64,000 bases of DNA, from the NCBI GenBank assembly GCA_033442325.1, contig JAWQFM010000021.1, positions 138,290 through 202,289 on the forward strand, read 5' to 3'. The stretch is from Salpingoeca rosetta (lineage: Eukaryota; Protista; Choanoflagellata). The number at the start of each line of letters is the position of its first letter. Within the stretch, counting starts at the first letter, position 1. Shown in pieces: positions 39,185-42,697 of this stretch. The notes beneath the pieces were generated by a model, which saw nothing but the letters and a program-made list of their open reading frames with translations, was not told the origin of the DNA and did not search any database. The translations under genes and the position numbers were made by a program.

Positions 39185-42100
39185 CTAGCTGAAATTCCCC
39201 CGCTTCGATGGGTTTGCGGGGCCAAGACTTGCTTCTGCTGCCTGTCGCCGTGTCGCCGCCTGTGCTGCTGACGACGACGATGACGATGATGACGAGGGCA
39301 CAGCGCCCCGCTGGCGATGGTGCTGCTGCTGGCGTGGCGCCTTGGAGTTCCAGTATTGGTACAGGTCACGGTGCAGCCGCTGCAGCTCGTGCCACGCGTG
39401 CGATTTCGTGGCGGTGTCCGTTGCGTCCAGCTTGCGGAACACCCACAAGGGGCGGGGCCTGCCCATGCCGCCGAGCGAGCACAGCACGCCTTCATATTGC
39501 ACGCACTCGAGCGTGGCCAGCACGAGCAGGCACATGGGCTCGCAAACGCGCGTCTTGTAGACGTCGGTGATGTGGATGACGCAGTGCCCGCCCGGCCGCA
39601 GCGCCGCCCATGCTCGCCGAATGCTTGCAAGCAAAAAGTCCACCAGCCAGCTCACAAACCCGCGGTACGTGTTCACGGACTGGCCGGGCAGCTGCGTGTA
39701 CACCTCAAAGTCGAAAAAGGGCGGGGAGGTAAACACGAGATCGTACGCGCTGCTCTCCAGCTGCGCGTGCTCAAACCCGGTGTATGTGATCTGAAAGTCG
39801 CCCAGGCGATCAGAGGGCAAGAACCGCCTTCGCATGGCATCGTGCCCCGCCTGTGGTGTGTGTGTGTGTGTGTGTGTGTGTGTGTGTGTGTGTGTGTGTG
39901 TGTGTGTGTGTGTGTGTGTGTGTGTGTGTGTGTGTGTGTGTGTGTGTGTGTGTGTGTGTGGGTGGTGGTGGTGGTGGNNNNNNNNNNNNNNNNNNNNNNN
40001 NNNNNNNNNNNNNNNNNNNNNNNNNNNNNNNNNNNNNNNNNNNNNNNNNNNNNNNNNNNNNNNNNNNNNNNNNNNNNCACACACACACGCACACACGCAC
40101 ACGCACACACACGCACACATGCACACACGCACACACACACGCGCGCACATCCACACACATAAACACACGCACGCACACACACACACACGCACACGCACAT
40201 CCACACATATAAACACACGCACACACACGCACATACACACACACACACACACACACACACACACACACACACACAACGCTCCCCTTCCGCCACGTGCGCA
40301 CTTTGAGGGTGTGGTTTGGGTCCCACGCATGGTAGGTGGTGACATCTGCCGCAATGGCGCCAAGCAAGCGGTCGCCCCAGCCGGCACTAAAGTCCAGCAC
40401 GCGCGTGGCCCGAAACAAACGCATCACGGCGGCGGCAAGCGAGGGCTTGAACTGCGTGCACTCCTTCACCTGCGTGTACACCTCCTCGCGCAGCGCGTAC
40501 AGCGTAATCTGCCCGCGCTTCCGCAAGCAGTCGCCAACCACGCCGTGCACAAACGCGGGGCGTGACCACAGCTCGAGCGGCGATGCTTCCTGGTCCTTGC
40601 GCACCGCGCGGAGGCGTGGCCCTTCCTGAAAGAAGTCGGCAAGCACGTCCATGCTGTCATAGTCGCCCCCATCGTGCACAAACGTGTGGCAACGCCCCTT
40701 GAACTGCAGCGGCAGGAACGGCTGTCCGTCGTGTGTGCGGGAGTAAATCCGGACATTGTGGGGCCGGCGCCGCTCGTCATTGTCAACTGTCGCTTCGTGT
40801 GTGCGCAGGCTCCCCATGCGCGTGTCCGGACTGCCCTCATACAACCGCTTCCAGGGGAAGGAGAGCACGCCCTCGGCATACAGCGTGGCCAGCACCGACA
40901 CCAGCACCGCCTGGTCAATGCCGGCCGCTTCAACCTCCTGCAGCGACGCCTCAAACACATTCACGACGGCGGGCGTCCGTGGCACCGCATCACCGCCATC
41001 ATCGCCATCACCACCACCGCACCCATCATCGCCATCCCGGCCACCATCGTTGTTGCTGGTGCTGGTGCTGTGTGGGTCGTTGGCAAGAGGATCCGCCATG
41101 GCAAAGGTGCGGCTGGCGACGAACAGCCACGTGCGACACGTCTGCTCAAACGCAGCAAACGCGCGCGCAGCATCGCTACCGCTGTTGGCGCTGGACGCAA
41201 AGTGGTGTGAAAACTCCTTGACAAACCCGGTCAACTTCCTGCCGTAGTACTGCGCCAGCTCCAGCCGCTTCTCCGCCAGCGCAGCAGCTACGCTGTCGCT
41301 GTGAAACACGTGCCCAAACGCCACACCGCGTTGCATAATGGCTGGCAGGGCGTCCTTGATCTTCTGTTTGTAGCGCTTGCACATCTCCACCATGAGCGTG
41401 GCCCACTGGAACGCGCCGGCCCGGGCGGCCAACTGCGCCTCGGCTGCACACCTCTCCACCATCTGCTCATGGATGTGTGCGCTGGCGTCGCGCGTGACAG
41501 CGTAGTCGCTCGCCACGTTCCACACGTGGTCGTCTGGCTGCGCGTGTTGGCGCACAAACTGCCACAGCTTGGCGTCATACGTGCGCACGCTTGGATATGG
41601 TGGTTGGAACCGCGCCACCTGCCAGAATTTTTCCTCCGCCACAAACAGCTGCGACTTGTATCGCTGGGTGCCATCCTTTTCAATCCTGTCACCACGGGGT
41701 TGTATGCACGCGAATGCAGTGGTGATGTGCACGAGTGTGAGACACGGGGGGGGGGAGGGAGGTGAAGGGAAGCAAGCAACAGGTGGCTTGAGTGGAGGCC
41801 GGCCTTGCCACAGAGACATACTTTGTCAAGTGACAGTTCAGAACAAACACGCTTCGACACATACGCAGACACACAAAAGCTTCGACTCATGCAAACAGAC
41901 GGACAGACACACAGACACACACAAAAAAGCTTCGACACGCACACACACACACACACACACACACACACACCCACACGCACGCACGCACGCACGCATACAC
42001 GCACGCATACACATGCACGCAAAGACACACACCCGCGAAGGTCGGGCCAAATGGTTTTGCCGACTTGCACGACCATAAACTCCGTGGTGGGGAAGATGCG

Positions 42101-42697
42101 AGCAAGCACCTCCAAGATGGCGGCAGAGCCCGCCACGAGCCACAGCCGGCGGGGTGGCTGCTCCAACACTGGCCGTGGCAGGGCAACGCGCAGCTGGCGC
42201 TCCAGTGAGTCGAGAAACGGCGGGCAGTGCAGCCCAAACGGCATCAGCAGCGTCTTGTGTCCGGCAGCCTGTCGCTCCTGCACATACACTTGGGCAGCCT
42301 GCTGCACGTCTTTCAGCCGGTTTGGGGGTCGCACGGTGTGAATGTCGGCGCCCTGGTCCTTGGCGCGCTGCGTGAGGTGGAACAGCATGCGATCGCGCCT
42401 CGACGCCACAAACACCGTGGCCTTAATTCCCATGGCCTTGCCCACCACTGCCATGGCGATCTGCGCAAACCCTTCCACGGGGCCCGCGTACACAATCTCC
42501 TGCACGGCGCTTGCATCGCCCAGCTCTTGCTCCGCAATCGTCATCACAGCCTGCGCCATGGCCCGCTGCTTGGTGCCACCAGGCAGCACGTCGTCCCGAA
42601 ACACATGGACTTGCACCTGCTGCCCATCAGCGCGCACGCAAGTGTGTGGCCGCAACACCACGGGTGGGTTTAGCAACTCCAGCCCATGACCACCCAT
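39185..42697 (-). CDS. Fusion of a fold-type II PLP-dependent enzyme (ACC deaminase/Cys desulfhydrase-like, viral type) and a SAM-dependent amino-methyltransferase (SPPF motif); 3 exons, 904 aa
   Basis: Exons 42697-42033, 41685-40302 and 39850-39185 join in frame via GT-AG introns (2715 nt). N-terminal motifs: RDDVLPGGTKQR, YAGPVEGFAQIAMA, MPFGL, LWLVAGS, YPSVRTYDAKLW, WNVA. C-terminal motifs: ECTQFKPSLA, LDFSAGWGDRLLGA (motif I), DLVFTSPPFFDFEVY (motif IV), LRPGGHCVIHITD. Confidence 0.85.

Follow-up and report, generated by a model that had tools for sequence, protein, structure and literature searches.

Trimming of nucleobase-borne amino acids by pyridoxal 5′-phosphate (PLP) enzymes has hitherto been described only for a handful of DNA pathways in phages. 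Lee et al. (PMC8989533) showed gp52 of phage M6 and gp226 of phage ViI to be PLP-dependent decarboxylases of amino-acid:nucleobase conjugates within DNA, the reactions being the conversion of C-alpha-glycinylthymidine to 5-aminoethyl-deoxyuridine (5-aminoethyl-dU) and of O-serinylthymidine to 5-aminoethoxymethyl-dU. The ViI enzyme was modelled on the structure 1j0a, and K36 was proposed as the Schiff-base lysine of gp52; in the thymidine hypermodification clusters, acetyltransferases and amidoligases act as amino-acid 'sculpting' enzymes (PMC8989533). A second point of reference is PCIF1 (CAPAM), the cap adenosine N6-methyltransferase, which is tied to the tail of RNA polymerase II by its WW domain (PMC4738411). 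The gene considered here, PTSG_07789 (P0001 in our protein set), encodes a hypothetical protein of the choanoflagellate Salpingoeca rosetta and lies on the minus strand of a 64,000-nucleotide stretch of DNA (assembly GCA_033442325.1, contig JAWQFM010000021.1, positions 138,290 to 202,289), which as a whole is called the window and to which its coordinates refer. It joins a PLP domain of the gp52 type to a methyltransferase (MT)-like module. The protein would be a bifunctional enzyme for the complex modification of a nucleic-acid base, on which a group derived from S-adenosylmethionine (SAM) would be installed and then decarboxylated. Such a two-step base hypermodification, with mRNA 5′ ends a likelier target than DNA, appears to be the best explanation as a whole, and its rough probability is put at 0.45.

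As judged from profile comparisons, the N-terminal domain of PTSG_07789 belongs to the PLP enzyme family of M6 gp52. With residues 1-292 as the query against PHROG, phrog_7093 was the sole match (E = 1.8e-17, 64.8 bits, profile positions 14-265 of 279), and gp52 itself, located at L093:11166-12116, is a core member of this family (E = 3.6e-159). Comparison of gp52 with an alignment of 54 PLP domains (A1) by hhalign gave 98.2% (E = 3e-14, 234 columns) and paired K36 of gp52, within SK, with K43 of PTSG_07789, within TK; the designation K36, as published, results from numbering from the start of the phrog match (open reading frame (ORF) residue 40). The C-terminal motifs were paired as well, YDLKAW with YDAKLW and FWNIG with IWNVA. 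Across A1, R45 is invariant, and K43 (conserved to at least 90%), D35, G41, Q44, the GS of the phosphate loop and YDAK.W are nearly so. The original prediction had called this half phage-type and cited the gp52 decarboxylase; both the family relationship and the intact Schiff-base lysine were borne out. An AlphaFold2 model built on A1 reached a predicted local distance difference test score (pLDDT) of 94.1, and the top 50 Foldseek matches in the PDB were all fold-type II PLP enzymes (TMq up to 0.68), led by D-cysteine desulfhydrase (4d8t) and a homologue of 1-aminocyclopropane-1-carboxylate (ACC) deaminase (1j0a), both with TMq 0.62-0.68. The best PDB sequence for the PLP profile was 9jqf (ACC deaminase/D-cysteine desulfhydrase, E = 4.8e-7). 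In the profile-PDB alignment, GPxxG(F/Y)AQ takes the place of what would be the QSN-type substrate loop of the ACC deaminase family. The generic Pfam family PALP (PF00291) scored 18.6 bits, below its gathering cut-off of 35. The Pfam and NCBIfam scan of the three exon products returned sub-threshold matches only, and nothing of use emerged when single sequences were searched against those of the PDB.

The C-terminal module is a relative of the SAM-type Rossmann amino-methyltransferases and possesses its own N-terminal domain, termed PRE. The conserved unit, as defined by an alignment of 90 MT modules (A2), spans ≈ 390 residues and comprises PRE (FPxKR, DxFQExxRL, LRE, ECTQFKP) together with the Rossmann part (LDFSAGWGDRL, DPN, TSPPFxDxExY). 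PTSG_07789 has every invariant column of A2, including the prolines of TSPPFF, so that motif IV is as intact as the original prediction had stated. An exhaustive HMMER search with exon 2 yielded 1626 cluster representatives at E < 1e-3, nearly all of them matching the final 200 residues of the exon, and at least 453 stretches in IMG/VR encode the MT module. PRE-MT constitutes a new family with more than 1600 cluster representatives, and PRE a new domain. On several viral contigs (L025, L026, L034, L037, L048; IMG/VR), the MT module is present in two to four paralogous copies, arranged in tandem within a few kilobases. The AlphaFold2 model of the module (pLDDT 95.8) matched PDB structures in Foldseek through its Rossmann part only, the partners being generic methyltransferases (Trm11, TrmN, TrmI, NSUN4; E ≈ 1e-6), and no solved structural relative of PRE was found in this search. 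Full-length matches were confined to viral models, those of giant viruses and a poxvirus; with TMq of 0.75-0.81 they were obtained in Pithovirus-like metagenomic genomes, in Satyrvirus, with an ATP-grasp enzyme as the fusion partner, and in salmon gill poxvirus. The poxvirus protein (BFVD model A0A0H4Y1D9, TMq 0.75) is a full-length structural homolog of the PRE-MT module, unexpected for a poxvirus.

The region around motif IV resembles the N4C/N6A DNA methylases of PF01555, as seen with TTHA0409 (2zie, E = 1.8e-4) and phrog_498 (E = 5.6e-6), although the PF01555 score of 13.4 bits for the MT half stays below the gathering cut-off of 26.7. The relationship to amino-methyltransferases proposed in the original prediction is upheld by this similarity. 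PTSG_07789 and PF01555 have in common the (S/D)PP(Y/F) form of motif IV, followed by a Y..GQ..Y..W..L.PGG layout, and FTSPPF fits the signature of the N4 methylases. Unlike the beta class of PF01555, PTSG_07789 is not circularly permuted, motif I preceding motif IV, and a family-specific N-terminal domain of ≈ 190 residues takes the place of a DNA target-recognition domain. The layout of the module is presumably M.PvuII-like. SPPF had also been put forward as a marker of N4-methylcytosine; the motif does match, but it gives no information on the substrate here. Similarity of the MT profile to the bdelloid enzyme N4CMT, the eukaryotic example of such methylases, was insignificant (8s9n, E = 0.4).

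The PLP-MT pair recurs across phages, giant viruses and protists, be it as a fusion, with the PLP domain on either side, or as adjoining genes. A PLP domain is carried by 58 of the 194 fetched MT relatives (≈ 30%), ≈ 46 times C-terminal of the MT module and ≈ 12 times N-terminal as in S. rosetta. The maximum-likelihood MT tree implies no fewer than 14 changes of fusion state, several of which are forced by well-supported branches alone. The PLP domain of S. rosetta matched only three of 50,697 phage records, and PLP is tied to a methylase in all three. In Microcystis phage Mae-JY30, ParB, a 294-aa MT gene and a PLP gene are consecutive, and a colinear alignment of the 294-aa gene with A2 covers ECTQFKP, motif I and motif IV in this order (hhalign 97.4%, E = 1.5e-11). 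The deposited names at this locus (L088, 5120-6711) look swapped: XAI96327, a 'DNA modification methylase', is the PLP enzyme, and XAI96326, named 'ParB/sulfiredoxin', contains the MT core. Erythrobacter phage vB_EliS_R6L presents a domain-insertion form of the pairing, in that gp1 (L087, 4786-7206; a 'DNA modification methylase' of ≈ 807 aa) has the PLP domain (aa ≈ 405-624) inserted within the methylase, flanked by the regions of motif I (aa 330-370) and motif IV (aa 653-718). The phage MT/PLP versions lie near ParB and a terminase gene. The original prediction had looked to PLP-methyltransferase fusions or neighbours in viral genomes for support, and they are seen in both phages and in giant viruses. 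Among the 79 giant-virus and phage-like IMG/VR loci, PLP was seen only as a fusion and never as a separate neighbour. The pair is old and tightly coupled.

Beside the PLP genes of R6L and Mae-JY30, neither a 5-hydroxymethyl-dU (5-hmdU) kinase nor an aGPT-Pplase, the amino-acid:DNA transferase, is annotated, and neither was found in the sampled giant-virus and eukaryotic loci. Since no such thymidine-pathway genes are annotated at the phage loci, the substrate of the PLP enzyme must come from another source. As to further partners, GNAT acetyltransferases are fused to the MT module in P0041, P0043, P0054 and P0108, and ATP-grasp ligases in P0086, P0108 and the Satyrvirus model; these fusions fit a substrate with amine and carboxylate handles.

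Transfer of a SAM-derived group followed by decarboxylation, which the original prediction had mentioned as an example, would account most economically for the recurrent fusion. We infer SAM to be the group donor because the SAM-binding MT-fold module is the only constant partner of the PLP domain. In the first step, the MT-like module would use SAM to add a group to the exocyclic nitrogen of a flipped-out base. The candidate group is 3-amino-3-carboxypropyl (acp) and not methyl, and acp is the most economical choice because only this group would offer the PLP domain an alpha-amino-acid substrate. In the second step, the PLP domain would form a Schiff base through K43 and decarboxylate the appended amino acid to an aminoalkyl group, as gp52 and gp226 do on DNA; from acp, an aminopropyl group would be left. 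SAM can donate its 3-amino-3-carboxypropyl group, and in wybutosine synthesis TYW2 is an amino-methyltransferase fold of the Trm5 type that has switched from methyl to acp transfer, the acp then being tailored. The by-product, methylthioadenosine or S-adenosylhomocysteine (SAH), is the biochemical discriminator of acp and methyl transfer.

The target of this chemistry in the eukaryote/giant-virus clade would most likely be found on RNA polymerase II transcripts, at the 5′ cap or the nucleotides next to it. In the Pfam scan of fusion partners, which covered 64 family proteins, enzymes of cap formation or cap methylation occur in eight. P0083, on a giant-virus-like contig, carries the triad of triphosphatase, guanylyltransferase and guanine-N7 methyltransferase; P0081 has FtsJ and VP39-like domains and P0192 a VP39-like one; P0057, P0087, P0129 and P0191 have PCIF1-like domains, with an intact NPPY, apart from the TSPPF site, in P0129 and P0191; and P0176 is fused to a TGS1-like domain with DPPWGG. 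A further FtsJ fusion is found in an ORF of at least 2305 aa (L019). P0083 and P0081 belong to the same subclade of the MT tree as S. rosetta. Along these lines, the MT-PLP gene at the giant-virus locus L001, ≈ 2 kb from Rpb1, is followed after 19 nt by a PCIF1-like gene. Relatives with PLP only, from protists and metagenomes, possess either WW domains (in three clusters) or a CCCH finger, and one of each resides on a contig with eukaryotic genes. Neither a DNA target-recognition nor a DNA-binding or ParB domain was found in the relatives of the eukaryote/giant-virus clade. Together, the fusions to cap enzymes and the WW and CCCH relatives in the clade of S. rosetta indicate mRNA 5′ ends, in place of the DNA target of the original prediction, and DNA is indicated only for the ParB-adjacent phage versions. 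For the S. rosetta enzyme itself, RNA 5′ ends are slightly favoured as the target, DNA is considered doubtful, and other substrates have little in their favour. The phage versions, linked to ParB, would most likely act on DNA.

Two side observations concern the surroundings of these genes. On two unrelated giant-virus contigs (L001, 10001-17913, and L089, 3615-10409), the PLP-bearing gene lies 1-2 kb from the gene of the largest RNA polymerase subunit. On a eukaryote-like contig (L092, 4023-15328), a CCCH-PLP gene is found ≈ 6 kb or less from genes of an AlkB-like 2-oxoglutarate-Fe(II) oxygenase and of Tet/JBP, which may be coincidence.

Several observations weigh against a two-step modification of mRNA 5′ ends, some of them on the side of chemistry and pairing and others on that of the target. 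The named relatives of the MT core (PF01555, TTHA0409 2zie) are all plain methyltransferases, and we know of no acp transferase of the MT-module type. At the Monosiga brevicollis locus, the 10 kb on either side of the PLP gene contain no MT module; an adjoining MT is likewise missing from the standalone PLP genes on giant-virus contigs for which DNA was at hand. The MT module may merely methylate, with the PLP domain working on an adduct from another source; alternatively, SAM or SAH may be the substrate of the PLP domain. It is in this sense quite unlikely, yet conceivable, that the protein is a plain N-methyltransferase of RNA or the cap (forming, for example, cap-proximal N6-methyladenosine, N4-methylcytidine or N2-methylguanosine), with an accessory PLP domain that handles the amino-acid part of SAM or SAH, for product removal or cofactor conversion, and not the nucleic acid. 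Besides the named relatives, the Foldseek matches to RNA methyltransferases of the Trm11, TrmN and TrmI type would suit it, as would a PLP fold nearest to two enzymes of free amino acids, ACC deaminase and D-cysteine desulfhydrase. On the other hand, the PLP domain scores far higher against the gp52 family than against generic PALP and has the C-terminal motifs of gp52, the pairing with PLP is specific to one MT family among many viral methyltransferases, and removal of SAH leaves the GNAT and ATP-grasp fusions unexplained.

With regard to the target, no capping, VP39 or PCIF1 genes were detected within 10 kb in the 79 IMG/VR loci, in a tblastn search with few queries. In the phage-like subset of these loci, the MT gene is found among genes for DNA polymerase, a clamp-loader-like AAA ATPase, a nuclease and DUF1599; this replication-gene synteny is uninformative for the eukaryotic clade because the genomes of the subset look like related phages. 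The only characterized PLP relatives act on DNA (PMC8989533), and the phage pair is linked to ParB. In addition, the count of eight cap-enzyme fusions among 64 proteins stands without a background rate from other giant-virus methyltransferases. Of these points, the action of the characterized relatives, the link to ParB and the replication-gene surroundings speak for the view that DNA is the substrate, adenine N6 or cytosine N4 of S. rosetta DNA being methylated or hypermodified and an appended amino acid being cut back by the PLP domain in the manner of phage M6. The fit of FTSPPF to the N4-cytosine signature, the similarities to phrog_498, PF01555 and 2zie, the terminase gene near the phage versions and the fusion of one relative, P0158, to an SNF2-type helicase agree with such a view. 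It is nevertheless unlikely in view of the relatives of the eukaryote/giant-virus clade, which lack DNA-binding and target-recognition domains, of the eight relatives with cap enzymes and the PLP-only homologs with WW or CCCH, and of the homolog in a poxvirus. We know of no poxvirus that methylates its own DNA.

The WW domains, as protein binders, also raise the question of a protein or small-molecule substrate, for example the C-terminal domain of RNA polymerase II or a protein of the capping complex, in which case the MT, PLP, GNAT and tubulin-tyrosine-ligase (TTL)-like domains would all be protein-modifying. TTL-family and RimJ/RimL-type GNAT domains typically modify proteins, and methyltransferases with (N/D/S)PPY-type motifs include protein glutamine methylases such as HemK. 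This is very unlikely, as the MT core aligns colinearly with DNA methylase genes of phages, the fused partners are mostly nucleic-acid enzymes, and the known substrates of the PLP family are nucleobase conjugates (PMC8989533).

The original prediction had regarded the gene as a virus-derived cassette domesticated with introns. Support for this was not obtained, as the nearest relatives of both halves reside in cellular eukaryotes, where they are separate proteins. The closest relatives of the MT module are proteins of the EukProt transcriptome set (P0077, 56% identity) and of contigs with ordinary eukaryotic genes, and the module is also present in Capsaspora and Planoprotostelium. In the PLP tree, the domain groups, with modest support, with MONBRDRAFT_28294 of M. 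brevicollis, transcriptome proteins and Amorphochlora. The two halves are separate genes in Planoprotostelium and separate proteins in M. brevicollis and the transcriptome-set relatives. An older gene pair seems to have been joined specifically in the lineage of S. rosetta. A recent viral origin was set aside, the trees placing both halves among sequences of cellular eukaryotes. A deep phage root of the PLP-MT pair is plausible, the trees of this analysis leaving it unrooted, and transfer between virus and host is possible in either direction.

PTSG_07789 is a single genuine three-exon nuclear gene and a PLP-methyltransferase fusion. As predicted originally, its exons join in frame (2715 nt, 904 codons plus stop, by script), and the spliced product of the window is identical, residue for residue, to the database protein. 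The positions of exons, domains, motifs and neighbours are compiled in Table 1.

Table 1. Features of PTSG_07789 and of its neighbours, in coordinates of the window.
Feature	Position	Strand	Description
Exon 1	42033..42697	-	ATG 42697-42695; aa 1-221, two bases of codon 222; greater part of the PLP domain
Intron 1	41686..42032	-	GT..AG, 347 nt; rich in GT/CA microsatellites
Exon 2	40302..41685	-	aa 222 (third base)-683; end of PLP domain, linker, PRE domain, motif I; one ORF
Intron 2	39851..40301	-	GT..AG, 451 nt as assembled; contains N gap 39978-40077
Exon 3	39185..39850	-	aa 684-904 and stop; remainder of Rossmann MT domain, low-complexity tail
PLP domain	41496..42697	-	aa 1 to ≈ 285, split by intron 1; fold-type II, gp52/phrog_7093 family
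K43 codon	42569..42571	-	Putative Schiff-base lysine in RDDVLPGGTKQR; conservation of at least 90% in A1; aligns with gp52 K36
Linker (MID)	40956..41474	-	aa 293 to ≈ 465, partly D/G-rich; conserved only in the close relative P0002; no Pfam match
PRE domain	40386..40955	-	aa ≈ 466-655; FPWKR ... DxFQExxRL ... LRE ... ECTQFKPS; family-specific; no solved relative
Motif I LDFSAGWGDRL	40365..40397	-	aa 652-662; SAM-binding loop; D, G, G invariant in A2
Rossmann MT-like domain	39350..40385	-	aa 656 to ≈ 850, split by intron 2; motif order I then IV
Motif IV TSPPFF	39713..39730	-	aa 724-729, followed by family-invariant DFEvY; P, P, E, Y invariant in A2
Neighbour ORF	37276-38769	-	Endonuclease/exonuclease/phosphatase family (Pfam E = 1.7e-13); ordinary eukaryotic-looking gene
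Neighbour ORF	43230-45098	+	622 aa; long threonine runs, serine run, hydrophobic C-terminal segment; no Pfam match

The fusion is independent of the splice prediction because the end of the PLP domain and motif I share exon 2, whose uninterrupted reading frame runs from the C-terminal PLP motif (YDAKLW..WNVA) through linker and pre-MTase domain to LDFSAGWGDRL. The N gap is flanked by (TG)n at 39852-39964 and (CA)n at 40078-40275 (plus strand). At the junction of exons 2 and 3, the peptide DPNHTLK|AGHDAM conforms to the family pattern DPNxxLxxGH, with no indel in the first 16 rows of the 90-row alignment; as the gap moreover lies wholly within intron 2, no coding sequence was lost in it. Read on the coding strand, intron 2 has a GT-rich start and a long (CA)n end with the gap between, and these opposed dinucleotide repeats could fold back, which may have caused the assembly break. 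At the junction of exons 1 and 2 (42020-42050, 41680-41700), S. rosetta has ≈ 7 additional residues, RGIEKDG, absent from 15 aligned homologs; they may be a lineage-specific loop insertion, or the donor or acceptor may be off by a few codons.

This insertion, together with the existence of PLP and MT as separate proteins in M. brevicollis and other eukaryotes of the transcriptome set, could be taken to mean that adjacent genes were wrongly merged in the annotation, or that a viral insertion or contaminant has been mistaken for a host gene. Such an artefact is hardly credible. Exon 2 is free of stops from the C-terminus of the PLP domain through motif I, the linker is shared with P0002, a second, related, partial protein, and GC content is even across the window. 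CA/GT microsatellites occur in both flanking intergenic regions as they do in the introns, and a flanking gene is eukaryotic. The merged-gene explanation was set aside on account of the continuous frame of exon 2. On the opposite side of the gene, the 622-aa ORF looks, from its composition, like a mucin-like membrane protein.

No published description of a PRE-MT/PLP family was found in the literature on PTSG_07789 and on giant-virus/PLP cap or PLP-methyltransferase themes. The Iyer/Aravind survey of eukaryotic adenine methylases makes no mention of PLP or pyridoxal, nor do the sections consulted describe the PRE-MT family. With PTSG_07789, the gp52-type enzyme family is joined to a putative SAM-dependent installer, and this combination is widespread in giant viruses and present in free-living relatives of animals. 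If the mRNA 5′ end is the target, a new class of cap-proximal modification would result, with a possible bearing on translation, decapping and the recognition of self and non-self RNA in virus-host conflicts; if DNA is the target, a eukaryotic pathway to a hypermodified base would be on record for the first time. It may be ventured, as a tentative idea more doubtful than probable, that giant viruses and protist lineages including choanoflagellates carry a hitherto unseen hypermodified base at the cap or the first transcribed nucleotides, with acp or aminopropyl on an exocyclic nitrogen, made by an acp-transferring MT and a gp52-type decarboxylase, i.e. by a phage DNA-hypermodification system retargeted to RNA. 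S. rosetta has working genome editing.

Among the known systems, M6 gp52 and ViI gp226 are the counterparts of the PLP half, being alike in family, Schiff-base lysine, the YD(A/L)K.W and WN(V/I) motifs and fold class (1j0a). The identity is only ≈ 20%, however, the host of PTSG_07789 is a eukaryote and its polymer likely RNA. While gp52 and gp226 have a 5-hmdU kinase, an amino-acid:DNA transferase and a radical SAM enzyme as genomic neighbours, the domain of PTSG_07789 is fused to a SAM-type MT module. The GNAT and ATP-grasp fusions of the MT family parallel the sculpting enzymes of the thymidine hypermodification clusters. ACC deaminase and D-cysteine desulfhydrase provide the best solved structures (4d8t, 1j0a, 9jqf), with the lysine in RDD..GG.K.R and a tyrosine in Y-x-x-K near the C-terminus in common, but the domain of PTSG_07789 is shorter (≈ 280 aa) and ≈ 14% identical. 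The acp transferases TYW2, Tsr3 and TapT are a functional analogy only, none of them matching the MT module in the PDB profile search or in Foldseek; to our knowledge, no PLP tailoring step occurs in acp transferase pathways.

PCIF1/CAPAM is the comparison for the suggested target. PTSG_07789 has no match to PF12237, and in the proteins that contain both, TSPPF and NPPY belong to separate domains, so that the PCIF1-like and MT domains of one protein presumably do different jobs. Conversely, relatives of the MT module are fused or adjacent to PCIF1-like domains, and relatives with PLP only have WW domains, as PCIF1 does. PCIF1 is an amino-methyltransferase of prokaryotic DNA-methylase descent that was recruited to mRNA 5′ ends (PMC4738411), and the MT module of PTSG_07789 would likewise be one.

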